This document shows positions 9,705 to 44,308 of a stretch of DNA of 64,000 nt, piece after piece. Position 1 is the stretch's first letter; each line of letters opens with the position of its first letter. The stretch is from Rebecca billardiae RCC1528 (lineage: Eukaryota; Protista; Haptophyta). The DNA is taken from positions 2,108,001-2,172,000 of the forward strand of contig OZ251234.1 of NCBI GenBank assembly GCA_965240325.2. The letters run 5' to 3'. The position numbers were made by a program, and so were the translations under genes. The notes below the pieces were generated by a model that saw only the letters and a list, made by a program, of their open reading frames with translations, did no database searches and was not told the DNA's origin.

Positions 9705-10221
9705 GGCGTTACACTCCCGAGTGACACTGAATCTCCCGAAATCTCGAATAAATATGAATAAATATCGATCTTCTCGGTTTGTAACTGTTTGAGTCCATTT
9801 AAGTTCGTTTAGGCATATAATTCCAGGGTCGTGTAGAATCCGCCTGCTGTGCCAATTTCAGACTGCCAAAATGTGATCTAGACGGTGCGATTCTGGTGCA
9901 AATAGCGAGATCATCTTGGAGATCGTGTTTCTCCCCTACTATAGTACTAATGTTGCCGAGATCGCGTCGAGATTGAGGTCGTATATCTCCAGTATGTGGC
10001 ATTTTTTCGCAAAACTTGTCAGCGTGACCCCAGCTCATATATTTCAGGCGAATATTGACATCCCGAAGTTTGAGAGCCTCATATCAAGACGACAGGAAGT
10101 TGGATTTTGGGCCACGCACCCCCCAGTGGGGCTCTGGGCCCCTCTATCATATGGACCCCGGCCGTCGGCGGCGGTAAAATTATTCAATATATATATATAT
10201 ATATATAATATATATATATTT

Positions 10222-11973
10222 AACGACGTGGCAGCATCGGACAAGCGTCAGGCTCAGAGTGCAACAGACACATAGAATGCGTCCGCGCCTTCCGTCCAGG
10301 TCAGACAGTGCGCCACCCGCAGCCCTGCCCCCCTACGGGAGCGGGGCCGGGATGGAGCACCGCCTCGGCCTGGGGCACGCGGCGGCGACGGCAGATGCCG
10401 CCGCGGCCGAGCGCCTTCCGGAGCACTTGGATGAGGGTGAGGTCGTAGTCGATGTCGCCGCCCGCCGACCTAGCGGCGAGCAGCTCCGGCAAGCGGCAGC
10501 CGCGGCTGTCGCCCCCGTGCGCCCGCGTGGGCGCCTGGATGAGGATGAGGTCGTAGTACAGGGTCGCTTTTTTGGGCTTCGGCGCACGGAGCGCCGATCT
10601 CGTCAACGAGCGGCCATCGTGAATGAAAGCGCGCGAAAGCTGCGTTTGCGGGGGCTCGCGCTGCCGCGGTCGTGCGACGCGGGCGAAGGGCGCGCGGCCC
10701 CTGGCGCTGGTCGGCGGTGACGAGGACACCCAGGTGCGCCATCTCGCGCGCCGCCACGCCCCTCTCCGCGTCTGCCTCGCGCACGCGCGGCGATTGCATT
10801 TGGATGTTGCATTCTTGCGCATGCTTGCGCGCCACGTTGCGGGACGAGAAAAAGCGTCATGCGGTTAGGTTTGGCAGTTTGAGATGGTTCAGATGATGTT
10901 GTGACAGGAACTGGAAGACCTAACCGCATGACGCCCCACCTGCGCGCGCTACACGCATCACGTGCTCTCCGCGCAGGTGAGCTTAGAAAAATGAAGCTGC
11001 TGCTCCTCTGCGAGGCCATCGAGGCGAGCGGCGGCTAGCATGGCGCAGCGCTCTCCCCAGCTGTCACGGCCAGCCACCTGCACCCGGCTGTGCTCGCACT
11101 CGCCTTGAGTGTGTGCACGGTCAACGTGTCGACGGTGCTCGGCGGTGTGTTTTTGACTGCTGGTTGGTACGCACGCAGCATGGGCCCACAGTGGAGTTGG
11201 GGTGCGTGCCGTGGCTGTGGCGCGCACGCGATCGACCCATACTACACACGCACAGCGCAGCTCGGCATCGTTACTGGCTTCAAACGTTGGCCACAGCTTA
11301 TTTGCTATCCGCGTGCGGCGATCGTCGGCTCCGAGCAATCCACGAGGATGACAACAGGCGGTGCGTACGCTCTGTGACGGCGTTGGGAGCGGCGCCTGCT
11401 GGCTGTGCAATCGCGCCTGGGTACGGCTCGCATGCTGCGCAGCGTCGGATACCAGCCTGATGCGGTTTGACGCACGGGCAGTCATCTGCTTTGCTCTGCA
11501 CGCGTGGCCGGCTGATCATCCTTTCGCAACCCGTGTCTGCGCGTGCAGTGACTGCTCCCAGATGGGCTCGACGCGAGGCAAACGCGTGCGTGACTCGTCG
11601 ATACGGAGCTCCCTTCCAGGCAAGCGAGCTTTTGAGCGCGCTCACCTCGCCCATGCCTACCCACGCGCATGAATTGCGCGGCCCACCGGTTCGACTGACG
11701 CGACGCGGTCGGTGCGGCGTGCTCGTGGGCAGGAGTGCGCGCTCAGTCGACGGTCAAGACGCGCGCCACGAGGAGCAATCATGTGCCCAAGGTCGCTCGA
11801 CCAGCGCGCGACCAACGGCATCCGCGTAGGGCAGCGCAGGAGCTCGCGTTTGACACAGTGGAGCGCCACTGGGGCGGACGGGCGCCATGGGCGCCCATCG
11901 GCGCTACCAGCCCTCCCGTGCGCCGAAGCCAAAAAAATTGACCCATATGTATGTCCGATGCTGCCACGTCGTT
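10222..11973. mobile_element. TIR element inserted in TA-type microsatellite
   Basis: Perfect TIR (T)AACGACGTGGCAGCATCGGACA at 10221-10243 and 11952-11974. Flanked by (TA)n on the left and (TATG)n on the right. Confidence 0.8.
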
Positions 11974-27453: not shown

Positions 27454-28157
27454 GTAAGTCTCCCGGCGCTGTACAGTGTACGGTTATTAACCTCAGACAG
27501 AGATCGGGCCCGTGACGAAACATGGCAGCGCCTCGGGACGCGTTTGGCCGGCGCTGGGGGGCGACACGCGTGGTGCTCGTTTGGCGTGGCGCGGTGTCGG
27601 ACCGGTCGCGCGCTTGGAAGATGGACGCACCTTCACGTTGTTCGGGCACCCCCGCATCAGGTCTATCACTCTATGCACGCGCGTCTCTCTCGCCGCCCGC
27701 GCGGGGCTCGCTTTCCGATCCGCCGCTGACATCTCGGCTGGGGAGGGATCGGCATGCCGGTGTCACGACGAGCCCGGGCACACGGAACTAATCGTCTACT
27801 CCCAAGCCGCGCGCACCTGGCGGGAAGTGGCTGGCGAGCAAGTTGGAACCGAATGCAATCATGATGGCACTCTACGCTCTGCTCAGCCTTGTCAGTGCGA
27901 GCACGACGGGAACGCCGTACGCGAGGCGAGGCGGCGCAATGAAGCGCGCCCCGATGGCGGAGAGCTCACCAACATGATCGAAGAGCCCGCCCGCACCCTC
28001 AGGCGTGGCTGCGGGGCGCGCGTCCGGGACCGCCTCAGGCCCCTGAGATTCGCCCCGGCCGCTCTGCGGGCATGGGTTCCCGGCATGCGCAGAGCGGTAA
28101 GGGTGTGTATCGGCCAGTGTCGGTCCATACGCGCTCCCGAGCGCGTGCCTCCGAGCG

Positions 28158-28373
28158 CGGGGCGGCCGCTTGCTGCAATGGCCGCCTCGATGAGGTGCGG
28201 CAACGCGCCCCTCACCTGCCTGCGCCGGTCTGTTTTGTGGCGGTGTCTTTGTGCAGTGTTGGATGGCGTCAATCACGCCTTAACCAAGTGTGCACGTTAA
28301 AACATAGTAAACTGTACTGTTTTGTGGCGGTGTCTTTGTGCAGTGTCATTCGGGCATGGCGTCAATCACGCCT
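28158..28373 (+). mobile_element. Family B retro-type fragment plus a partial tandem copy
   Basis: Matches about 2467-2634, then restarts at CTGTTTTGTGGCGGTG at about 28317. Confidence 0.65.
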
Positions 28374-28492
28374 GTCAGAACAGTCACGGCGGGAATTCGC
28401 GCGTTGGGTTCAACACAAATTTGCAGCATGATGGTCGGTCAAAAGAAAATGTCGAACCCGGAGCCGAATGACCGGGGGGATCGAACCTGATA

Positions 28493-29286
28493 TAGTGACC
28501 CACAAATTTAGTTGCCGGCTGCAGCAGGCACGACTTTGTCTCAGCCCGCACGCCCGCTACGCGCCGACCCGGGCAGAGCCCATCCGCCCGCGCATGCACC
28601 AGGCCCAGCCGCGTCAGTACATACCCACCCGGCCGCGGCACCCGCGCTCTGTGCGCCACGGTGTCGATGCGCCCGGCAGTCGGTGCGCATGCACGAGCCA
28701 GCCGGCGGGCAGCTACGGGCTGGTTTTCGGCGTGGAGCGCGGTCGTGTGAGCTGCATTAATTCAGCTGACCCCCGGCTTTTGTGCATTCGGGAGTCGTGC
28801 TGCTACGGTGGGCGTGCCACGCGCCAACTCGACGCTGGCAAAATTAGGCGACGAAAGTGCACGCGCAGCCACACGCAGCCCATATTGATGCTCTCGGAGC
28901 AGGCTCGGGCATGCACTCGATCGGCTCTGGCTGACGGCAGCGCCAAGCTGGCGGCGCGGCGCGAGGGTGCATGCGTGGCGTGGGCGGAGCTACGTCGCAC
29001 ACGCACCGCGCGGCGCGCGGCTCAGCGCACGGAGGCTGCCGACAGCCGGCGGCACGCAGGCAGGTCTGCTCGCCGCCAGTCGAGCTCGCCGGCCGCCGGG
29101 TACCAAACGTCAACCCAGGATGCACAGCCACGCCTATTTGCGAGGACTCGAGCAATCGGGTCCGGGCGCACCTCATGTGCACGGCAGTGGAGTGGGCCAA
29201 GTACGCCCCTGGTATGGTGGCGCGCCGCTGCTTTGCTGCGCTGATATGGCGAACAATGTCGGGAGGCTTAAACTTGTGAGGGACTA
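28493..29286 (+). repeat. 794-bp terminal module, copy 1 (MITE-like, own imperfect TIRs)
   Basis: No differences seen from 38300-39093 (offset 9807). Confidence 0.95.
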
Positions 29287-29291
29287 AGTGA

Positions 29292-32200
29292 GCAGCCTCG
29301 GCTGAGGCCGTGAGCTGCCGTAGGCTGATCTGACCCGACAAAAGTCGGCGCGCGAGCGCGCGCGCGCGCGGCGCGGCGCCGCCCCGCTGGCACGTGGGCT
29401 CGGTGTGCCTGGGCCGCGCCGAGTGCCCCGCACCCGGATCTCGCCCAGCTAGCTCGTCCTCGCCGCGCTCTGAGGCCCCCGTAGCAGTCGTAGCTGCTCG
29501 CCGCCGCCGCAGATCGTGAAGACCAGCTGCTGTCAGCTGCTCGCTCTGAGCCGGGACATGGGGCCGCGTGGAGGAGGCGCCGTGCGGCCGGGCGCGCGCG
29601 TGCGCGTCGAGCGGCCCCTGGGCGCACTGCTCACGCGTCGGCGCGCCCGCCCGGCGCGCGCATCATCGCTCAGTCGCGCCGCTCTGCTGAGCTAGCCGCC
29701 GCTGGTCGCAGCCGTCGGCTGAGGCCGTGAGCTGCCGTAGGCTGATCTGACCCGACAAAAGTCGGCGCGCGAGCGCGCGCGCGCGCGGCGCGGCGCCGCC
29801 CCGCTGGCACGTGGGCTCGGTGTGCCTGGGCCGCGCCGAGTGCCCCGCACCCCGATCTCGCCCAGCTAGCTCGTCCTCGCCGCGCTCTGAGGCCCCCGTA
29901 GCAGTCGTAGCTGCTCGCCGCCGCCGCAGATCGTGAAGACCAGCTGCTGTCAGCTGCTCGCTCTGAGCCGGGACATGGGGCCGCGAGGAGGAGGCGCCGT
30001 GCGGCCGGGCGCGCGCGTGCGCGTCGAGCGGCCCCGGGGCGCACTGCTCACGCGTCGGCGTGCCCGCCCGGCGCGCGCATCATCGCTCAGTCGCGCCGCT
30101 CTGCTGAGCTAGCCGCCGCTGGTCGCAGCCGTCGGCTGAGGCCGTGAGCTGCCGTCAGCTGATCTGACCCGACAAAAGTCGGCGCGAGCGCGCGCGCGCG
30201 CGCGGCGCCGCGCCGCCCCGCTGGCACGTGGGCTCGGTGTGCCTGGGCCGCGCCGAGTGCCCCGCACCCGGATCTCGCCCAGCTAGCTCGTCCTCGCCGC
30301 GCTCTGAGGCCCCCGTAGCAGTCGTAGCTGCTCGCCGCCGCCGCAGATCGTGAAGACCAGCTGCTGTCAGCTGCTCGCTCTGAGCCGGGACATGGGGCCG
30401 CGTGGAGGAGGCGCCGTGCGGCCGGGCGCGCGCGTGCGCGTCGAGCGGCCCCTGGGCGCACTGCTCACGCGTCGGCGCGCCCGCCCGGCGCGCGCATCAT
30501 CGCTCAGTCGCGCCGCTCTGCTGAGCTAGCCGCCGCTGGTCGCAGCCGTCGGCTGAGGCCGTGAGCTGCCGTAGGCTGATCTGACCCGACAAAAGTCGGC
30601 GCGCGAGCGCGCGCGCGCGCGGCGCGGCGCCGCCCCGCTGGCACGTGGGCTCGGTGTGCCTGGGCCGCGCCGAGTGCCCCGCACCCCGATCTCGCCCAGC
30701 TAGCTCGTCCTCGCCGCGCTCTGAGGCCCCCGTAGCAGTCGTAGCTGCTCGCCGCCGCCGCAGATCGTGAAGACCAGCTGCTGTCAGCTGCTCGCTCTGA
30801 GCCGGGACATGGGGCCGCGAGGAGGAGGCGCCGTGCGGCCGGGCGCGCGCGTGCGCGTCGAGCGGCCCCGGGGCGCACTGCTCACGCGTCGGCGTGCCCG
30901 CCCGGCGCGCGCATCATCGCTCAGTCGCGCCGCTCTGCTGAGCTAGCCGCCGCTGGTCGCAGCCGTCGGCTGAGGCCGTGAGCTGCCGTCAGCTGATCTG
31001 ACCCGACAAAAGTCGGCGCGAGCGCGCGCGCGCGCGCGGCGCCGCGCCGCCCCGCTGGCACGTGGGCTCGGTGTGCCTGGGCCACGCAGAGCACCCCGCA
31101 CCCGGATCTCGCCCAGCTAGCTCGTCCTCGCCGCGCTCTGAGGCCCCCGTAGCAGTCGTAGCTGCTCGCCGCCGCCGCAGATCGTGAAGACCAGCTGCTG
31201 TCAGCTGCTCGCTCTGAGCCGGGACATGGGGCCGCGTGGAGGAGGCGCCGTGCGGCCGGGCGCGCGCGTGCGCGTCGAGCGGCCCCTGGGCGCACTGCTC
31301 ACGCGTCGGCGCGCCCGCCCGGCGCGCGCATCATCGCTCAGTCGCGCCGCTCTGCTGAGCTAGCCGCCGCTGGTCGCAGCCGTCGGCTGAGGCCGTGAGC
31401 TGCCGTAGGCTGATCTGACCCGACAAAAGTCGGCGCGCGAGCGCGCGCGCGCGCGGCGCGGCGCCGCCCCGCTGGCACGTGGGCTCGGTGTGCCTGGGCC
31501 GCGCCGAGTGCCCCGCACCCCGATCTCGCCCAGCTAGCTCGTCCTCGCCGCGCTCTGAGGCCCCCGTAGCAGTCGTAGCTGCTCGCCGCCGCCGCAGATC
31601 GTGAAGACCAGCTGCTGTCAGCTGCTCGCTCTGAGCCGGGACATGGGGCCGCGAGGAGGAGGCGCCGTGCGGCCGGGCGCGCGCGTGCGCGTCGAGCGGC
31701 CCCGGGGCGCACTGCTCACGCGTCGGCGTGCCCGCCCGGCGCGCGCATCATCGCTCAGTCGCGCCGCTCTGCTGAGCTAGCCGCCGCTGGTCGCAGCCGT
31801 CGGCTGAGGCCGTGAGCTGCCGTCAGCTGATCTGACCCGACAAAAGTCGGCGCGAGCGCGCGCGCGCGCGCGGCGCCGCGCCGCCCCGCTGGCACGTGGG
31901 CTCGGTGTGCCTGGGCCGCGCCGAGTGCCCCGCACCCGGATCTCGCCCAGCTAGCTCGTCCTCGCCGCGCTCTGAGGCCCCCGTAGCAGTCGTAGCTGCT
32001 CGCCGCCGCCGCAGATCGTGAAGACCAGCTGCTGTCAGCTGCTCGCTCTGAGCCGGGACATGGGGCCGCGTGGAGGAGGCGCCGTGCGGCCGGGCGCGCG
32101 CGTGCGCGTCGAGCGGCCCCTGGGCGCACTGCTCACGCGTCGGCGCGCCCGCCCGGCGCGCGCATCATCGCTCAGTCGCGCCGCTCTGCTGAGCTAGCCG

Positions 32201-35200
32201 CCGCTGGTCGCAGCCGTCGGCTGAGGCCGTGAGCTGCCGTAGGCTGATCTGACCCGACAAAAGTCGGCGCGCGAGCGCGCGCGCGCGCGGCGCGGCGCCG
32301 CCCCGCTGGCACGTGGGCTCGGTGTGCCTGGGCCGCGCCGAGTGCCCCGCACCCCGATCTCGCCCAGCTAGCTCGTCCTCGCCGCGCTCTGAGGCCCCCG
32401 TAGCAGTCGTAGCTGCTCGCCGCCGCCGCAGATCGTGAAGACCAGCTGCTGTCAGCTGCTCGCTCTGAGCCGGGACATGGGGCCGCGAGGAGGAGGCGCC
32501 GTGCAGCCGGGCGCGCGCGTGCGCGTCGAGCGGCCCCGGGGCGCACTGCTCACGCGTCGGCGTGCCCGCCCGGCGCGCGCATCATCGCTCAGTCGCGCCG
32601 CTCTGCTGAGCTAGCCGCCGCTGGTCGCAGCCGTCGGCTGAGGCCGTGAGCTGCCGTCAGCTGATCTGACCCGACAAAAGTCGGCGCGAGCGCGCGCGCG
32701 CGCGCGGCGCCGCGCCGCCCCACTGGCACGTGGGCTCGGTGTGCCTGGGCCACGCAGAGCACCCCGCACCCGGATCTCGCCCAGCTAGCTCGTCCTCGCC
32801 GCGCTCTGAGGCCCCCGTAGCAGTCGTAGCTGCTCGCCGCCGCCGCAGATCGTGAAGACCAGCTGCTGTCAGCTGCTCGCTCTGAGCCGGGACATGGGGC
32901 CGCGTGGAGGAGGCGCCGTGCGGCCGGGCGCGCGCGTGCGCGTCGAGCGGCCCCTGGGCGCACTGCTCACGCGTCGGCGCGCCCGCCCGGCGCGCGCATC
33001 ATCGCTCAGTCGCGCCGCTCTGCTGAGCTAGCCGCCGCTGGTCGCAGCCGTCGGCTGAGGCCGTGAGCTGCCGTAGGCTGATCTGACCCGACAAAAGTCG
33101 GCGCGCGAGCGCGCGCGCGCGCGGCGCGGCGCCGCCCCGCTGGCACGTGGGCTCGGTGTGCCTGGGCCGCGCCGAGTGCCCCGCACCCCGATCTCGCCCA
33201 GCTAGCTCGTCCTCGCCGCGCTCTGAGGCCCCCGTAGCAGTCGTAGCTGCTCGCCGCCGCCGCAGATCGTGAAGACCAGCTGCTGTCAGCTGCTCGCTCT
33301 GAGCCGGGACATGGGGCCGCGAGGAGGAGGCGCCGTGCGGCCGGGCGCGCGCGTGCGCGTCGAGCGGCCCCGGGGCGCACTGCTCACGCGTCGGCGTGCC
33401 CGCCCGGCGCGCGCATCATCGCTCAGTCGCGCCGCTCTGCTGAGCTAGCCGCCGCTGGTCGCAGCCGTCGGCTGAGGCCGTGAGCTGCCGTCAGCTGATC
33501 TGACCCGACAAAAGTCGGCGCGAGCGCGCGCGCGCGCGCGGCGCCGCGCCGCCCCGCTGGCACGTGGGCTCGGTGTGCCTGGGCCACGCCGAGTGCCCCG
33601 CACCCGGATCTCGCCCAGCTAGCTCGTCCTCGCCGCGCTCTGAGGCCCCCGTAGCAGTCGTAGCTGCTCGCCGCCGCCTCAGATCGTGAAGACCAGCTGC
33701 TGTCAGCTGCTCGCTCTGAGCCGGGACATGGGGCCGCGTGGAGGAGGCGCCGTGCGGCCGGGCGCGCGCGTGCGCGTCGAGCGGCCCCTGGGCGCACTGC
33801 TCACGCGTCGGCGCGCCCGCCCGGCGCGCGCATCATCGCTCAGTCGCGCCGCTCTGCTGAGCTAGCCGCCGCTGGTCGCAGCCGTCGGCTGAGGCCGTGA
33901 GCTGCCGTAGGCTGATCTGACCCGACAAAAGTCGGCGCGCGAGCACGCGCGCGCGCGGCGCGGCGCCGCCCCGCTGGCACGTGGGCTCGGTGTGCCTGGG
34001 CCGCGCCGAGTGCCCCGCACCCCGATCTCGCCCAGCTAGCTCGTCCTCGCCGCGCTCTGAGGCCCCCGTAGCAGTCGTAGCTGCTCGCCGCCGCCGCAGA
34101 TCGTGAAGACCAGCTGCTGTCAGCTGCTCGCTCTGAGCCGGGACATGGGGCCGCGAGGAGGAGGCGCCGTGCGGCCGGGCGCGCGCGTGCGCGTCGAGCG
34201 GCCCCGGGGCGCACTGCTCACGCGTCGGCGTGCCCGCCCGGCGCGCGCATCATCGCTCAGTCGCGCCGCTCTGCTGAGCTAGCCGCCGCTGGTCGCAGCC
34301 GTCGGCTGAGGCCGTGAGCTGCCGTCAGCTGATCTGACCCGACAAAAGTCGGCGCGAGCGCGCGCGCGCGCGCGGCGCCGCGCCGCCCCGCTGGCACGTG
34401 GGCTCGGTGTGCCTGGGCCACGCAGAGCACCCCGCACCCGGATCTCGCCCAGCTAGCTCGTCCTCGCCGCGCTCTGAGGCCCCCGTAGCAGTCGTAGCTG
34501 CTCGCCGCCGCCGCAGATCGTGAAGACCAGCTGCTGTCAGCTGCTCGCTCTGAGCCGGGACATGGGGCCGCGAGGAGGAGGCGCCGTGCGGCCGGGCGCG
34601 CGCGTGCGCGTCGAGCGGCCCCGGGGCGCACTGCTCACGCGTCGGCGTGCCCGCCCGGCGCGCGCATCATCGCTCAGTCGCGCCGCTCTGCTGAGCTAGC
34701 CGCCGCTGGTCGCAGCCGTCGGCTGAGGCCGTGAGCTGCCGTCAGCTGATCTGACCCGACAAAAGTCGGCGCGCGAGCGCGCGCGCGCGGCGCGCCGCGC
34801 CACCTCGCTGGCACGTGGGCTCGGTGCGCCTGGGCCGCGCCGAGCACCCCGCACCCGGATCTCGCCCAGCTAGCTCGTCCTCGCCGCGCTCTGAGGCCCC
34901 CGTAGCAGTCGTAGCTGCTCGCCGCCGCCGCAGATCGTGAAGACCAGCTGCTGTCAGCTGCTCGCTCTGAGCCGGGACATGGGGCCGCGTGGAGGAGACG
35001 CCGTGCGGCCGGGCGCGCGCGTGCGCGTCGAGCGGCACCCGGGCGCACTGCTCACGTGTCGGCGCGCCCGCCCGGCGCGCGCATCATCGCTCAGTCGCGC
35101 CGCTCTGCTGAGCTAGCCGCCGCTGGTCGCAGCCGTCGGCTGAGGCCGTGAGCTGCCGTAAGCTGATCTGACCCGACAAAAGTCGGCGCGCGAGCGCGCG

Positions 35201-36391
35201 CGCGCGGCGCGCCGCGCCACCTCGCTGGCACGTGGGCTCAGTGCGCCTGGGCCGCGCCGAGCGTCCCGCACCCCGATCGCGCCCAGCCCGCGCGTCCTCG
35301 CCGCGCTCTGAGGTCCCCGTAGCAGTCGTAGCTGCTCGCCGCCGCCGCAGATCGTGAAGACCAGTTGCTGTCAGCTGCTCGCTCTGAGCCGGGACATGGG
35401 GCCGCGAGGAGGAGGCGCCGTGCGGCCGGGCGCGCGCGTGCGCGTCGAGCGGCCCCGGGGCGCACTGCTCACGCGTCGGCGTGCCCGCCCGGCGCGCGCA
35501 TCATCGCTCAGTCGCGCCGCTCTGCTGAGCTAGCCGCCGCTGGTCGCAGCCGTCGGCTGAGGCCGTGAGCTGCCGTCAGCTGATCTGACCCGACAAAAGT
35601 CGGCGCGAGCGCGCGCGCGCGCGCGGCGCCGCGCCGCCCCGCTGGCACGTGGGCTCGGTGTGCCTGGGCCACGCAGAGCACCCCGCACCCGGATCTCGCC
35701 CAGCTAGCTCGTCCTCGCCGCGCTCTGAGGCCCCCGTAGCAGTCGTAGCTGCTCGCCGCCGCCGCAGATCGTGAAGACCAGCTGCTGTCAGCTGCTCGCT
35801 CTGAGCCGGGACATGGGGCCGCGAGGAGGAGGCGCCGTGCGGCCGGGCGCGCGCGTGCGCGTCGAGCGGCCCCTGGGCGCACTGCTCACGCGTCGGCGTG
35901 CCCGCCCGGCGCGCGCATCATCGCTCAGTCGCGCCGCTCTGCTGAGCTAGCCGCCGCTGGTCGCAGCCGTCGGCTGAGGCCGTGAGCTGCCGTAGGCTGA
36001 TCTGACCCGACAAAAGTCGGCGCGCGAGCGCGCGCGCGCGCGGCGCGGCGCCGCCCCGCTGGCACGTGGGCTCGGTGTGCCTGGGCCGCGCCGAGTGCCC
36101 CGCACCCCGATCTCGCCCAGCTAGCTCGTCCTCGCCGCGCGCTCTGAGGCCCCCGTAGCAGTCGTAGCTGCTCGCCGCCGCCGCAGATCGTGAAGACCAG
36201 TTGCTGTCAGCTGCTCGCTCTGAGCCGGGACATGGGGCCGCGTGGAGGAGGCGCCGTGCGGCCGGGCGCGCGCGCGCGCGTCGAGCGGCCCCGGGGCGCA
36301 CTGCTCACGCGTCGGCGTGCCCGCCCGGCGCGCACATCATCGCTCAGTCGCGCCGCTCTGCTGAGCTAGCCGCCGCTCGTCGCAGCCGTCG
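29292..36391. repeat. Tandem array of 17 x about 417 bp with 2-mer and 4-mer higher-order structure
   Basis: ORF-track period is 417. The array starts and ends at the same phase, GCAGCC(G)TCG. Confidence 0.97.
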
Positions 36392-36519
36392 TGAGACGTG
36401 ACGTTACTCCGCGTTAGACGTAGAGTAAGCTATAGCCTATAGGCTGATATGATATGACTCGAGATCTACTATTAACTGAGCAGCTAATAAACTATACCAT
36501 CATTGTCCGACACTGCTCT

Positions 36520-37821
36520 TCAGCGCACGCGCTGCTCACCCTTGGTCTCGACGCAGTCCTGCAGCCGACGCCGATAGGATTTGAACAGCGCCTGGATGAA
36601 CTTCTTGTCGTTCCGTACCTCCTCGAACTTAGCCTTCACCACCTCCTCGAACTCCTTGAAGGTTGGCCGCTGCTTGCTCGGGTTGTCGGTGCACCACTTG
36701 TGCTTCCATGCGTTGAGAAGCTGCTCCACGCGCGCCCAGACATGCTCAATGAGCGACAAGTCGGCGCTGTTCGGCGGCCAGCTACGGCCCGGCTGACCCT
36801 CGGTCGACTTGGGGCCAAGGTGTCCCTCGGGGCCAAACCGCTCGTCGAGCCATTGGCGCACAGCCAGCGCCGTGTGGGGTGAGGCACTGTCCTGCTGGAA
36901 GATCATCTGGCTGATGAAGTTGCCGAAGAGCGCCTGGGCCTCCTTGTCCAGGAAAGGCAGCACGTCGTTCAGGTACTCCTTCCAGCACACGCCACGGCAC
37001 TGCTTGCCGCGACCATTCTCATGCGTGCGGCCGTGAGTGCCCGTGGCAAAATAGAGCGGCGTGATGCCGCGAGAGCAGGCGCCGGCGTAGCCATGGATCA
37101 CGCAGTCACCTGCCTGGACCTGGTTCAGCTTGCGCTTGGGCTCGTCACGCAGCGTCCACGACATCACCGTGCTCCGGTTCGTGACGTCGAACTTGAAGTA
37201 CTTCGAGTCGGTGAAGAACAGCCTGTCAACCATCGCCTTGACTCTCTGCAGCCACCGTGCGAACGCCACCCGCTTCTTCGCCTGCTGAGCCGTGATCTGC
37301 TTCCTCACCTTGAGCGGCTCCCAATCCATCTTCTTCCGCGCCGCGCGGCGTAGCGTCTCGTCGGAGACGTCGAGCGCGGACGCATCGAGCGATCCAGCAC
37401 CGACGGCGCGGCACGCAGCCTTCCGCACACTCTGACCAGCCGGCCCGGCGCTGAGCTCGGACGTAAGCGCCGCCTGCGCCTTGGCACTGAGGCGTGGGCG
37501 TGGACCGCGCTTCGGCTTCCCGTCAGCATCGATGTGCCAGCCCTCCGTGTGCCAGTCCATGAACCACTTCTTCATCGTCTTCTCGGTGACCTCGGCCGAC
37601 CGCGCCGCCCTCTGGAAAGCTGAGGCCAACGGAGAGCCTTCATTGAGGCACAGCACGCACGCGCCGATCGCATGGTGAAACCTCTCCGCAGGGCCCAGGG
37701 CCTTCGGGTTGTAATCCAGAGCAATACACTCCCGCGATACCCGCCTGTTCGGAGCGTAGCCGACGCGGTGGGCGCCTTTGCGCCCGCGCCGATCTTTGGG
37801 CGCGGTCGGCGCGCGGCCCAT
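36520..37821 (-). CDS. IS630/Tc1-mariner superfamily DDE transposase, 433 aa, intact, intronless
   Basis: GPRPRLS linker, VSDETLRR HTH, KKRVAFA, LFFTDSKYF (D1), IFQQDSASPH (D2), WPPNSADLSLIEHVW (E), and C-terminal SYRRRLQDCVETKG. Confidence 0.93.
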   Translation of the reverse strand: MGRAPTAPKDRRGRKGAHRVGYAPNRRVSRECIALDYNPKALGPAERFHHAIGACVLCLNEGSPLASAFQRAARSAEVTEKTMKKWFMDWHTEGWHIDADGKPKRGPRPRLSAKAQAALTSELSAGPAGQSVRKAACRAVGAGSLDASALDVSDETLRRAARKKMDWEPLKVRKQITAQQAKKRVAFARWLQRVKAMVDRLFFTDSKYFKFDVTNRSTVMSWTLRDEPKRKLNQVQAGDCVIHGYAGACSRGITPLYFATGTHGRTHENGRGKQCRGVCWKEYLNDVLPFLDKEAQALFGNFISQMIFQQDSASPHTALAVRQWLDERFGPEGHLGPKSTEGQPGRSWPPNSADLSLIEHVWARVEQLLNAWKHKWCTDNPSKQRPTFKEFEEVVKAKFEEVRNDKKFIQALFKSYRRRLQDCVETKGEQRVR

Positions 37822-38299
37822 CAGCCGCCGCCGGCTGCTTGGCCACGACCGAAGATGAGTGCACGTTACGTCCCGAGCCGCCCAAAGTTGATCTTACAGC
37901 TGACGAAGCGGTGTGGCCTCTATTCGAACTCGTTCCGTCCATGGCGAGCGCCCCAGCGACGCAGCCGCCGCGTGCGCTGGGGCCGCACGCCCTCGCGGAT
38001 GTGCGCTGGGCACGAGCTCGGCGCCACGGGTTGAGCTCGTCGAGCTATGACAAGCGGCGTGGCGCAAGTCCAACCCAGTGGAGGCCCCAACTGCCGGCCC
38101 CGCCGCCGCGCGGGAGCGTCCGATTAACCTCAGCTGCTCTGCGCAAGATGTGGGCTCCTGTGCCCCACCAACTCGCCGGAGGCGGACGACGCGCTGGGAT
38201 CGCTGCACGGCGGGAATATCCCCGACCCATGTGGACCGACGCCGGCCTCGCTCGCCGTCGCCCTCGCCCTCGTTCCGACTTTTCTACTACCTGCTCACT

Positions 38300-39093
38300 T
38301 AGTGACCCACAAATTTAGTTGCCGGCTGCAGCAGGCACGACTTTGTCTCAGCCCGCACGCCCGCTACGCGCCGACCCGGGCAGAGCCCATCCGCCCGCGC
38401 ATGCACCAGGCCCAGCCGCGTCAGTACATACCCACCCGGCCGCGGCACCCGCGCTCTGTGCGCCACGGTGTCGATGCGCCCGGCAGTCGGTGCGCATGCA
38501 CGAGCCAGCCGGCGGGCAGCTACGGGCTGGTTTTCGGCGTGGAGCGCGGTCGTGTGAGCTGCATTAATTCAGCTGACCCCCGGCTTTTGTGCATTCGGGA
38601 GTCGTGCTGCTACGGTGGGCGTGCCACGCGCCAACTCGACGCTGGCAAAATTAGGCGACGAAAGTGCACGCGCAGCCACACGCAGCCCATATTGATGCTC
38701 TCGGAGCAGGCTCGGGCATGCACTCGATCGGCTCTGGCTGACGGCAGCGCCAAGCTGGCGGCGCGGCGCGAGGGTGCATGCGTGGCGTGGGCGGAGCTAC
38801 GTCGCACACGCACCGCGCGGCGCGCGGCTCAGCGCACGGAGGCTGCCGACAGCCGGCGGCACGCAGGCAGGTCTGCTCGCCGCCAGTCGAGCTCGCCGGC
38901 CGCCGGGTACCAAACGTCAACCCAGGATGCACAGCCACGCCTATTTGCGAGGACTCGAGCAATCGGGTCCGGGCGCACCTCATGTGCACGGCAGTGGAGT
39001 GGGCCAAGTACGCCCCTGGTATGGTGGCGCGCCGCTGCTTTGCTGCGCTGATATGGCGAACAATGTCGGGAGGCTTAAACTTGTGAGGGACTA
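38300..39093 (+). repeat. 794-bp terminal module, copy 2
   Basis: Direct repeat of 28493-29286. Confidence 0.95.
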
Positions 39094-39165
39094 TACACGC
39101 GGGCAGCGCGCCCGTCCGGGCCTTGACGCGCGCTGCCGCTCCGCCTACGGGGCACGCGGCGGGGA

Positions 39166-40400
39166 TGCTGAGGCGATGCCAGCGTTCGAGTCCCATCCTC
39201 CTGCGCGCGCTTGTGCTGCTCGTCGCGCCCCTCATCATGCACTGCGAGGTGTCGAAGAGTGCGCCGCCTTCCAAGCAGCACGCCTTCTTCTCGCCCACCG
39301 CGCTGGTTGTCGCGCAAGGTGGGCATGCTGCCGAGCAGGAGCGATTCAACGCCATCCTGAGCGGCTCCACGGCGCATCGCCTGGTCGTGGTGAACGCGTT
39401 CGGGCGTGTGTCCACCGCGCGCATCATCGCGCACAATCTCGCCGCCCACTTCGCCGATGGGTCCGAGTGGGAGCGAGTCGCCTTTGCGTACGCGCACGGC
39501 GAGGTGCTGCGCGACGCGCTCGACGCCGATCCGAAGTTCAAGGCCTCGGGTGGGGGCTGCACTGTGTTCGAAGTGCGCGGGCGGTACTGGGGCGAGTTCC
39601 TGAGCTATCTCCGCGCAGACGCTGTCTCTCGCTTTGAGCACGTCTTCCTGCTGCTCGACGACCTGCTGATGCCCAGCTCTGGCGCTCTGCGCGTGAGCGT
39701 GCCGCGCCTACTCCACTCGATGCGCGCTCTCGGCGTCAGCCTGATCTCGCCAGCGATCGAGGGCAGCCAGGTGCTCTACGTGGCGATGCGGGACCTGACG
39801 GCCAACCGCTGCATACGCCGCGTGCACACCATCGAGCTTTTTGCGACGCTCTTCGAGCAGCGTGCGTGGGCGTGTTTTATGTCCATGCTCGACAGCTCGC
39901 ATGTCGGCGGCTGCGGCTATGACGCGTGCTTTCCCAAGCACTGCCCGCTGTACCGCGCGGCCATCGACGACACGGCAGTGGCTTACCACCTCGAGCGGCG
40001 GTGGCCAAGCCACCATGCCGTCCTAAGCATGTCCAACTCAGAGCGCATGCTTCTCTTCACGCTCCAGCACAATAGCGCTGGCACTGGCGACAAAGGCCAA
40101 GGGCAAGGAGCTGTCGGCAGTCGCCTCACACGCAATGGTACGCGCAGCACTCACGGGTGGAAGAAGAAGCACCGGATCGGAAAGATGCGTATCAACCCGT
40201 GCTGGCGTGAGAAGACGACGCAGCAGCATCGTCTTGATGAGCATCAGGGCGGCGTTTTAGGCGCTGCGGAGCTGTGGCGCAAGCTGAACTGCACCCCGAC
40301 CAGGGATCTGCTGGCTGCGGACGCCATCCCCCAGGATGAAATGCGGCTAGCATGCCAACCCGCACCCGCCGGCCCGAACCCATCGCCGTACGCCTCGTGA
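39166..40400 (+). CDS. DUF707-like putative glycosyltransferase, copy 1
   Basis: Signal anchor, FEHVFLLLDDL, LISPAI, IELFATLFEQRAWACF and GCGYD. These resemble the DUF707 YIFLWDED / VExxAPVFSRxAWRC / GWGLD motifs. Confidence 0.7.
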
Positions 40401-41018: not shown

Positions 41019-43087
41019 TATCATAATCAGTCAGCAGTACATGCATTCAACGTCAAAACATGGATATATATTATATATATAAGCAGAATCTTCTGCTCCG
41101 TTTTTCGCCTATATATATAGCGTCAGTTTGACGAAATAAGGTCCTGGGAGTGCTGGGACGACCACGCTAACTAGTAACTGTAGCCTGGCGTCCAATTCCA
41201 AACGGCCCATTGGAGCACTTTCGGGGATTTTATATCGCGCCAAATGAACGCGCGGGCCCCTAGGCACGCGCTCACACCCGGAAACAGCACTGGATCGCTG
41301 AGACTCGATCGCTGAGCCGGGTGTGAACCCTGATGGCGTTGGGAGTGACGGCGGATGGAGCGGATGGGGCATGGGCACTCAGGCCCAAGAAGATGATGAT
41401 GTGACGCAAGGGTGATCGTCTGCAGCTGCTCTGGGTGCTCATCCGCACACCGGCGGTACGCATCACGCGGATGTGGCGGCGCGTGAGGCGGATATCCCAC
41501 TGCAACAGATAGGATCTGATCCTATATGGCATAGCAGGATGAGTTCACCAGAGCGCCAGCGCCTCAGTTCTGCGCATACGATCATCGGTGTTGCTATATC
41601 GTATGCGCCATGCGTGTGCAGCAGTCGATTTACGCGACGCTCGACCCGCACGCTCTTGGATTCGTGGGCTCGTGGTCCACAAGGACGGCCGCCACCATCG
41701 TGGAAGGTCCGTGGCCGCACGCACGATGGCGGTTGCCCTCTCTTCGCCCCGCCCAAGAGTCGCAAAGCGGCAACGGCCGCGACGGCTTCACGCGCTCCAT
41801 CCGTGGAGCCCAAAACATGCGGTAGACGACACGTGACGGTCACGGCACGACGAATTCGTCCCAGCCCTGATCGTCGAACCATCAATATGGGTTGGCGCTG
41901 CGCGTCAACTTGGGCTGGAAACCTGTTTCTGAAACGCATGATGGCTCGCAGCCAGTAGCCCGAGCTCGGAATTCTGACGCTGCCAACGGCGCCACAGGGG
42001 CGCAGCGGCAGGGCTGACGACGCGCGCGCGTGTGCACGTCTGACCACGGAGTGCGCGCTGCAATGACTGGCCCGTCCGCAGCACCACGCCCCGCGCTGTG
42101 AGTGAGAGTGTGGCCCGCGCCCAAGCGAGAACGCGGGCCGGGCGGCACTCCGCCGACCTCGCCGGCCGCCGACCAGCCCGCGGCCGCCTGCTGCAGCTCG
42201 TGGAACACGCAGTCGCGCGCTCGCGCGTGGAGGGCGGACCTGCGCGTATGCGCCCGCCGGGCTTGCCGCTTCATCCGCTGGCACCGCAGTGCAGGTCGAG
42301 CCGTCCGCCGCCCACCGAGCAGGCGCCACACCTTGCGCTCGTGCTCGAGCTGAGGCGGCGCGTGTCGCCGGAGCCGGCGGGTTCGCGCGCGTGCGCGTGG
42401 TGGGCAGCCTCGCGCGTGCGCCCGCCGCGCGCCCCGCGTCGCTCGCTTGGCGCCGCACGCGAGCCGCTCGTCGCGCGACCGAACGAGACGTCAAGGGCGA
42501 CCCTTGGAATGGCGTGGGCTCTCCGCCTGTGTCCTGCACGGGACGTCGTCGACGCGAGGCCGCGCGAGGTTGCTCCGATGCTCGTAGTCCAATGCAAGAT
42601 GATACCCGCGTGCCGCTATCAGCGCGCCCTTTCGCTCGTAAATTGTCTAGCGAGAATGTGACGGTTCGTGTGAATTTGAAGTGTGAACTCGCGACACGAC
42701 GAATAATGCGCCGATGCGATTCGCGCGCGAATGTGAGTACGCAAAGCGCCGAACGACGAGCGGTTTTGGACCGAACGACGAGCGGTTTTTGTCCTATCGA
42801 GCGCGTAAGCGGGTGAATTGCGCATATGTGACCCATAGGCGACTGGGCCGGTGGTGAGCCGGGCGTCAAAAAAAGGCCTGCGAGTGCGACGGGCTGGTGA
42901 GCAGTGCCTCCGGCAGCGTTTATAGCGTGAAGTCGTTTTAAATTCCCCTTTATAACGGGCTCCGGGTGATGCCTTTGTTCTCGTGGGTTTCCAGAATTTG
43001 TTCTCGTGGGTTTCCAGAATAATAATAGTATAAGTTCCAAAGTGAATTGATGACGCGCGCTGCCGCTCCGACGGGCACGCGGCGGGG

Positions 43088-44308
43088 ATGCTGAGGCGAT
43101 GCCAGCGTTCGAGTCCCATCCTCCTGCGCGCGCTTGTGCTGCTCGTCGCGCCCCACATCATGCACTGCGAGGTGTCAAAGAGTGCGCCGCCTTCCAAGCA
43201 GCACGCCTTCTTTTCGCCCACCGCGCTGGTTGTCGCGCAAGGTGGGCATGCTGCCGAGCAGGAGCGATTCAACGCCATCCTGAGCGGCTCCACGGCGCAT
43301 CGCCTGGTCGTGGTGAACGCGTTCGGGCGTGTGTCCACCGCGCGCGTCATCGCGCACAATCTCGCCGCCCACTTCGCCGATGGGTCCGAGTGGGAGCGAG
43401 TCGCCTTTGCGTACGCGCACGGCGAGGTGCTGCGCGACGCGCTCGACGCCGATCCGAAGTTCAGGGCCTCGGGTGGGGGCTGCACTGTGTTCGAAGTGCG
43501 CGGGCGGTACTGGGGCGAGTTCCTGAGCTATCTCCGCGCAGACGCTGTCTCTCGCTTTGAGCACGTCTTCCTGCTGCTCGACGACCTGCTGATGCCCAGC
43601 TCTGGCGCTCTGCGCGTGAGCGTGCCGCGCCTGCTCCACTCGATGCGCGCTCTCGGCGTCAGCCTGATCTCGCCAGCGATCGAGGGCAGCCACATGTTAT
43701 ACGTGGCGATGCGGGACCTGACGGCCAACCGCTGCATACGCCGCGTGCACACCATCGAGCTTTTTGCGACGCTCTTCGAGCAGCGCGCGTGGGCGTGTTT
43801 TATGTCCATGCTCGACAGCTCGCTTGTCGGCGGCTGCGGCTATGACGCGTGCTTTCCCAAGCACTGCCCGCTGTACCGCGCGGCCATCGACGACACGGCA
43901 GTGGCTTACCACCTCGAGCGGCGGTGGCCAAGCCACCATGCCGTCCTAAGCATGTCCAACTCAGAGCGCATGCTTCTCTTCACGCTCCAGCACAATCGCG
44001 CTGGCACTGGCGACAAAGGCCAAGGGCAAGGAGCTGTCGGCAGTCGCCTCACACGCAATGGTACGCGCAGCACTCACGGGCGGAAGCAGACGCCCCGGCG
44101 GATCGAAAAGATGCGTATCAACCCGTGCTGGCGTGAGACGAATGCGACGCAGCATCAGGGCTTTCGTGGCTCTGGGGAGCTGTGGCGCAAGCTGAACTGC
44201 ACCCCGACCGCGGATCTGCTGGCTGCGGACGCCATCCCCCAGGATGAAATGCGGCTAGCATGCCAACCCGCACCCGCCGGCCCGAACCCATCGCCGTACG
44301 TGGCGTGA
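43088..44308 (+). CDS. DUF707-like putative glycosyltransferase, copy 2
   Basis: Near-identical paralog of 39166-40400. Confidence 0.7.
   Translation: MLRRCQRSSPILLRALVLLVAPHIMHCEVSKSAPPSKQHAFFSPTALVVAQGGHAAEQERFNAILSGSTAHRLVVVNAFGRVSTARVIAHNLAAHFADGSEWERVAFAYAHGEVLRDALDADPKFRASGGGCTVFEVRGRYWGEFLSYLRADAVSRFEHVFLLLDDLLMPSSGALRVSVPRLLHSMRALGVSLISPAIEGSHMLYVAMRDLTANRCIRRVHTIELFATLFEQRAWACFMSMLDSSLVGGCGYDACFPKHCPLYRAAIDDTAVAYHLERRWPSHHAVLSMSNSERMLLFTLQHNRAGTGDKGQGQGAVGSRLTRNGTRSTHGRKQTPRRIEKMRINPCWRETNATQHQGFRGSGELWRKLNCTPTADLLAADAIPQDEMRLACQPAPAGPNPSPYVA

Follow-up and report, generated by a model that had tools for sequence, protein, structure and literature searches.

A Tc1/mariner-type transposon with a KolobokP-like two-part architecture in the haptophyte Rebecca billardiae

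We analysed a 64,000-nt stretch of the genome of the alga Rebecca billardiae RCC1528 (GenBank assembly GCA_965240325.2, contig OZ251234.1, positions 2,108,001 to 2,172,000 of the forward strand), hereafter the window, which contains a composite-looking DNA transposon at positions 28493-39093. The genome is eukaryotic and comprises 72 Mb in 41 contigs, and the surroundings of the element have a GC content of ~68%. The element is composed of a 794-bp module (28493-29286, plus strand), a core of 9013 bp (29287-38299) and a second 794-bp module (38300-39093, plus strand). The two modules are direct repeats with 100% identity over 794 bp, including a rare T at module position 4. They are non-coding and present imperfect inverted ends (TAGTGACCC at the start, GGGACTA at the finish); by direct reading, 14 of 19 positions agree between TAGTGACCCACAAATTTAG and the reverse complement of the other end (TAGTCCCTCACAAGTTTAA). 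An extra TA, the presumed target-site duplication (TSD), is present only at the outer module ends (28491-28492 on the left and 39094-39095 on the right), and the sequence beyond differs between the two sides. The inner junctions, where GGGACTA is followed by AGTGAGCAG and CTGCTCACT by TAGTGACC, present no additional TA. A preliminary description of this DNA had proposed the same layout, and its coordinates, its restriction of the extra TA to the outer ends and its imperfect inverted module ends were all confirmed.

The core possesses inverted ends of its own: AGTGAGCAG at 29287-29295 and CTGCTCACT at 38291-38299 (plus-strand coordinates) match perfectly over 9 bp, with a probability of ~4e-6 for an exact match at fixed positions. 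The preliminary description had made no mention of these ends. A satellite array begins within the 5' end of the core and comprises 17.0 units of 417 bp (29292-36391, 96% matches in Tandem Repeats Finder). The transposase gene lies on the minus strand (36520-37821) as an uninterrupted open reading frame (ORF) of 433 amino acids (aa). Downstream of its stop codon, the segment 36392-36519 (minus strand), less GC-rich by direct reading, is a putative 3' untranslated region (UTR), and the segment upstream of its start (37822-38290, minus strand) is, by its position, a putative promoter and 5' UTR. No reverse transcriptase (RT) or other Pfam domain passed its cut-off in core and module ORFs of at least 100 aa; short or spliced genes may exist. 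The array, the intact transposase and the lack of an RT had likewise been part of the preliminary description.

The 433-aa protein is assigned, on alignment, profile and predicted structure, to the Tc1/mariner superfamily as a DDD transposase that is complete in one exon. The motifs FFTDS, QQDSASPH and NSADLSLIEHVW are recognisable by eye. Single-sequence analyses with Pfam, a word-indexed protein search (self-match only), phmmer against the PDB (no match) and AlphaFold (AF2; pLDDT 41) were uninformative, so that an exhaustive HMMER search and a family profile were needed. The HMMER search yielded 409 relatives. Across an alignment of 40 of them, residues D205, D311 and D354 are invariant, and the second aspartate is followed by 42 residues in the algal protein versus 27-41 in the relatives. 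Pfam matched DDE_3 in 36 of the 40 (E ≤ 0.001, best 9.9e-16) and HTH_Tnp_Tc3_2 in 22. The family profile matched the catalytic domain of Sleeping Beauty (5cr4, E = 5.9e-38), Mos1 (E = 3.8e-16) and SETMAR, as well as the DNA-binding domain of Tc3 (1u78, E = 4e-7) and Paired (1pdn). An AF2 model built with the alignment (pLDDT 84) matched chains of the full-length Mos1 transpososome (4u7b, E = 2.8e-11) and predicted helices at residues 44-162. The protein thus combines the N-terminal bipartite paired-like helix-turn-helix (HTH) of Tc1/mariner transposases, as indicated by the profile, the model and Pfam matches in relatives, with a DDE/DDD triad in an RNase H-like domain, as indicated by alignment, profile and model. 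The mobile unit also presents the terminal inverted repeats (TIRs) of this superfamily, and a search of a language-model atlas concurs with the assignment, which the preliminary description had anticipated. The transposase ORF is intact in 14 of the 14 copies examined. Only six differences in it separate the two core subfamilies described below, four of them non-synonymous, too few to inform on selection.

The genome contains ~40 copies of the module, 23 of the transposase segment and at least 240 matches to the satellite; all 150 of the satellite matches listed are inside elements of this transposon family. We reconstructed the loci, writing M for module and C for core (numbered labels such as C39 denote contigs). 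At least ten further module-core(n)-module copies occupy unrelated sites; each has a TA outside either end, and the flanking sequences are unrelated. The arrangement M-C-M is present on C39, C33, C35 and C10, twice on C1 and in the window; M-C-C-C-M was found on C30 and M-C-C-C-C-M on C7. C1 also contains an M-C-M-C-M-C-M-C-C-M array, and C3 an M-C-(200-N gap)-M-C-M copy, in which the gap (L038:7306-7505; G000:C3, ~3676769-3676968) leaves the assembly unresolved inside a dimeric element. An M-M dimer with one common TA lies at G000:C1:2318313-2319898, and solo modules with TA on both sides are present on C13, C8 and C35. Older truncated modules are present as well. The number of satellite units per copy ranges from 5 to 17 (5, 6, 6, 7, 14, 17 and others). 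The copies on C39 and C33 are both exactly 6001 bp long, and their flanks are 28% identical, which corresponds to random sequence. Altogether, TA precedes the outer 5' module end in the window and at 12 other loci, and 13 loci have it outside both ends. In all new insertions, the boundaries are module ends with a TA beyond them.

The joints between units are equally regular. The core is complete in 22 of 23 cases, and each of these 22 adjoins a module or another core, the remaining one being cut by an assembly gap. The census comprises 15 module-core and six core-core joints, the core 5' inverted end recurring at both kinds, and one module-module joint. Each contains a single TA, and 22 of 22 are head-to-tail with none inverted. 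An independent sequencing run (X1) also holds a core-TA-core joint and module junctions. This run, the only public one with the family, consists of short contigs; it covers the module and a core-module junction, and the unique flanks of the window locus are not covered. From the copies at unrelated loci, the joint census and the 14 intact transposase ORFs we conclude that the element represents a mobile and recently active family rather than a one-off nesting. Indeed, the preliminary description had expected further copies at unrelated TA sites together with solo modules, both of which exist, and had named cores without modules as the sign of a nesting accident, of which there are none among the 22 complete cores. 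The window element is probably a copy of a young and still active transposon family.

Sequence variants further inform on how copies arise. The T at module position 4 (G4T) is shared by both window modules, nearly all other modules having G; it also occurs in the solo module on C13 and in an older module subfamily. Similarly, C649T is present in both modules of the C33 copy, and C147T is found in one module only of one copy on C1. The cores form two subfamilies that differ by ~9 SNPs and two indels over 1.9 kb, with identical modules; a 3-bp indel and SNPs in the putative promoter segment are among the distinguishing differences. Private variants shared by both modules fit a monomer cut from an unequal-crossover multimer. 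They would be expected if the middle module of such a multimer is a hybrid and a monomer is afterwards excised and moved, and multimers are plentiful in this genome. Flanking repeats did not provide an empty site for the window copy: the sole repeat in the left flank stops 172 bp before the insertion, and the paralog of the right flank begins 30 bp after it. The only paralogous "empty" site, which belongs to another copy and is 83% identical, fits a duplication of 2 or 4 bp about equally. Positions 9783-10230 of the window are an 83% paralog of the flank of another element copy; near 10190, an extended (TA)n tract comes next.

Several other observations concern members of this family. On C35, a 1.7-kb insert bearing inverted ends GCCTGTTTTATTTCTAC (L050:1401-3097, G000:C35:669670-671366) interrupts a solo module at module position 398/399; the insert belongs to a different transposon family, and the same junction is present in run X1. 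A cluster of ~110 kb of the family lies at G000:C1:2318313-2431806 (L018-L026, L029). It contains two mutually inverted occurrences of the outer flank TACAAGTTGTTTTC (L019, L024) and a partial copy on the minus strand that leads into plus-strand satellite, an arrangement that indicates either a large inverted duplication or a misassembly. Module-like sequences with 83-84% identity at G000:C11:554068-554812 and C3:716219-716936 are read as an older sister module family. Finally, a candidate subterminal motif of roughly CGAC-T/A-TT-GT was noticed by eye in all four ends and in every satellite unit.

Distant relatives from metagenomes (28-34% identity), the nearest proteins with informative surroundings, present the same module-core grammar. 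Scaffold L053 (P0004) reads M(796)-C(2200)-C-M-C, with joints CCACCCC-TA-TGTGCG, ACACA-TA-TGTGCG and ACACA-TA-GGGGAGG and an outer end TA-TA. L054 has an M+C period of 2996 bp. In L056 (P0005), a module of 797 bp with TAGGGG ends and a core of 2420 bp form a period of 3217, and in L061 abutted ends are joined via one TA. L057 (P0006) contains a 775-bp module after the gene, with Tc1-like TAGTGGGGTGCAAAAG ends. Module TIRs of the relatives are 25-26 bp long and start with TAGGGG or TAGTGGGG. The three best-resolved modules measure 794, 796 and 797 bp, and no DNA or ORF similarity is detectable among the modules of the three lineages; module length is thus conserved while module sequence is not. 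In addition, six contigs encoding transposase relatives (L054, L056, L059, L060, L061 and L068) overlap exactly at their termini over 55-127 nt and represent tandem or circular units, the periods of which are 2.07-3.2 kb.

The preliminary description knew of no eukaryotic family with this layout, which is incorrect. The layout has been described for KolobokP of animals, in which long terminal direct repeats (LTDR) with their own short TIRs surround an internal region (INT) (Kojima & Bao 2022, Mob DNA 13:24, PMC9587614). The known forms of KolobokP are the LTDR on its own, (LTDR-INT)n-LTDR and LTDR-(INT)n-LTDR, including LTDR-(INT)4-LTDR, with one common terminal motif at INT-INT joints; the multimers were tentatively ascribed to an encoded homing endonuclease, and the family was termed unique (PMC9587614). 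The algal element shares with it the direct repeats with inverted ends around a transposase-encoding internal region, the solo and multimer forms, a single terminal motif where internal regions abut and an apparently constrained repeat length. In contrast, sequence, profile and fold place its transposase in Tc1/mariner rather than Kolobok. Moreover, the His-Me finger (His-Cys box) homing endonuclease of KolobokP was not found by Pfam in the algal ORFs of at least 100 aa. The presumed TSD is TA instead of 3-5 bp, the ends are TAG...CTA instead of RR...YY, and the modules measure ~795 bp compared to repeats of ~450 or 660 bp. The hosts also differ (an alga versus animals), and the algal core contains a satellite. 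The open-access literature that we searched held no Tc1/mariner family whose terminal direct repeats are long, Repbase being outside this scope. What is new here is a KolobokP-like architecture in Tc1/mariner.

Other mobile elements share only some of these traits. Like the canonical Tc1/mariner elements Tc1, Tc3, Sleeping Beauty and Mos1, the algal element has a transposase with a paired-like HTH and a DDD domain, a probable TA target duplication and YAGTG-like module termini; the module ends, TAG[G/T]G..., are Tc1-like. However, the canonical elements are single units between two inverted repeats, whereas the insertion ends of the algal element are on separate direct 794-bp modules, its gene-bearing core has inverted ends of 9 bp only and its catalytic spacing is DD42D. 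Bacterial composites (Tn9/IS1, IS26 units) similarly consist of two direct TIR-bearing units that bracket and carry DNA and leave solo units behind. Their flanking units encode the transposase, whereas the algal modules are non-coding and it is the bracketed DNA that holds the transposase. LTR retrotransposons, solo LTRs and TRIM arrays present identical direct terminal repeats, solo repeats, repeat-sharing tandem arrays and private variants in both repeats, as observed here. Unlike them, the algal element lacks RT and integrase genes, a primer-binding site and a polypurine tract, and instead of TG...CA ends and a TSD of 4-6 bp it has a presumed 2-bp TA duplication and true inverted ends, TAG...CTA.

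We consider it fairly probable that the window element belongs to a very young Tc1/mariner family whose two-part, composite-like architecture is fixed and which is mobilised as one unit by its outer module ends. The core forms a discrete entity, delimited by TA and equipped with inverted ends of its own, and also occurs in core-core tandems; the architecture is therefore read as fixed and common to the distant relatives. On the same features, together with the layout of the relatives, an opportunistic composite was rejected. In this reading, the satellite of the alga has grown from the core's own 5' end. In the mechanism that we propose, the left module most likely contributes its 5' end and the right module its 3' end as substrates of the transposase, such that M-C(n)-M would be excised as one piece and inserted at a TA, which would be duplicated. 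Solo modules would result from recombination between modules or from a module moving alone, and (M-C)n-M from modules crossing over unequally. Joints of the core-core or module-module type would form after loss of an inner unit, or after circularisation of an excised unit that then recombines back, and the derivative forms would follow the scheme proposed for KolobokP. The circle and the LTR-like life cycle suggested in the preliminary description are hypothetical.

The seamless single-TA joints could be explained by the way in which the ends are cut. In Tc1 and Tc3, the transposase cleaves the non-transferred strand 2 nt into the element, and the transposases of Mos1 and Sleeping Beauty leave a 3-nt stagger. 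All units end in a palindromic TA, and seamless joints would be expected if the 2-nt stagger of Tc1/Tc3 also applies to the algal element. The 2-nt overhangs on the excised unit and on the donor gap would then be self-complementary TA, allowing resealing without a footprint. Loss of an inner unit would convert M-C-M into M-M and C-M-C into C-C without a seam, and an excised unit could close into a circle through a single-TA joint and be taken up again by a resident copy via homologous recombination, its orientation being preserved. Random sticky-end ligation of excised units was rejected as the source of the chains, as 0 of the 22 joints are inverted. The anatomy, the copies, the joints, the transposase family and the grammar of the relatives are observed, whereas the ends that are cut, the 2-nt stagger, the circles and possible roles of satellite and module length are inferred.

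Several points weigh against the reading of a fixed unit moving on its outer ends. We infer unit movement from the copies alone; the preliminary proposal of one mobile unit with its transposase in the core is supported to this extent. For the stagger of 2 nt we rely on Tc1/Tc3, and one of 3 nt would not yield seamless joints. A Tc1-like element that had inserted independently would show precisely the perfect 9-bp inverted ends and the flanking TAs of the core. Between the core subfamilies, ~4 differences per module would be expected and none was seen (P ~0.02), a hint that the history of the modules is in part distinct from that of the cores. Formally, the duplication can be read as TA with TAG...CTA ends or as TATA (4 bp) with modules of 790 bp. 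Finally, the 433-aa protein on its own scored 15.8 bits against Pfam DDE_3 (E = 0.013), below the cut-off of 28.6.

Alternatively, composite copies might be built in place, the small module transposing alone and a circle of one module and one core, freed by recombination between modules and comparable to an IS26-type translocatable unit, recombining into a resident solo module to produce M-C-M at a new locus. This route, which was considered for KolobokP by Kojima & Bao (PMC9587614), is consistent with the solo modules and multimers, the uniform modules across core subfamilies, the tandem or circular units of the relatives and the rare T4 of the window in the C13 solo module. A single crossover of a solo module with the module of a circle, however, would place a private variant in one of the two resulting modules only, whereas G4T in the window and C649T on C33 are each present in both, and we regard the route as unlikely. 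Somewhat less likely still is that the core is an autonomous Tc1-like element that targets the TA of a module-dimer junction or a TA beside another core, the modules being an unrelated or parasitised miniature inverted-repeat transposable element (MITE). The TA on both sides of the core, its perfect inverted ends and the end-TA-end structure of core-core joints would agree with such an element, and the module dimer on C1 has the exact sequence of its unoccupied site. However, there is one dimer against 15 module-core joints, and canonical insertion of a TA-ended element would double the TA at the joint, which was never seen. Insertion could also occur in either orientation, yet no inverted joint was found among 22, and the module-core order of the distant relatives would demand that targeting be conserved.

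Lastly, the structure could be an artefact or a local accident, that is, a misassembled repeat or a segmental duplication. Indeed, no read of run X1 crosses the window locus, and the large arrays of the family hold a gap and an odd inverted junction. This explanation nevertheless appears very improbable: ten independent loci on nine contigs present the same grammar to the base with TA flanks, the joints are also found in the independent run, and relatives from unrelated metagenomes have the same layout.

The surroundings of the window copy contain further repeats. A ~190-bp repeat at 28130-28320, 172 bp left of the insertion and also present at 2467-2634, gave 626 first-look candidates with hundreds of copies at 99-100% identity genome-wide, and is probably a very young MITE or short interspersed element (SINE). 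To the right of the element, a 370-bp stretch (39124-39493) recurs 4 kb downstream at 43051-43416 (98%) and has copies of 84-86% identity on other contigs; a 40-nt piece of it (39394-39433) resembles a portion of the satellite unit at 75%. No tRNA or Rfam feature was found near the insertion site.

These results suggest that the architecture of KolobokP and its derivative forms evolved convergently in a second superfamily and that a homing endonuclease is not needed for the direct-module layout, since the same architecture and forms are found in a superfamily without that nuclease. More tentatively, and with slightly less than even confidence, the elements may represent an undescribed Tc1/mariner clade of algae and other microbial eukaryotes. 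This clade would be characterised by an obligate two-part architecture in which length-constrained modules of ~795 bp and a core with the gene meet at seamless single-TA joints; its origin would be independent of KolobokP and would not have involved a homing endonuclease. If so, the direct-repeat layout, the multimers and the concerted identity of the ends would follow from transposase chemistry and host recombination alone, and such elements could seed and spread satellites. The family is nearly mutation-free, all examined transposase genes are intact and the algal genome is small, and it therefore constitutes a practical test system. It lends itself to asking how four candidate ends are dealt with by a cut-and-paste transposase, why modules keep lengths of 794, 796 and 797 bp without sequence conservation, and by what route the end of a transposon turns into a satellite with 5 to 17 copies, depending on the insertion.

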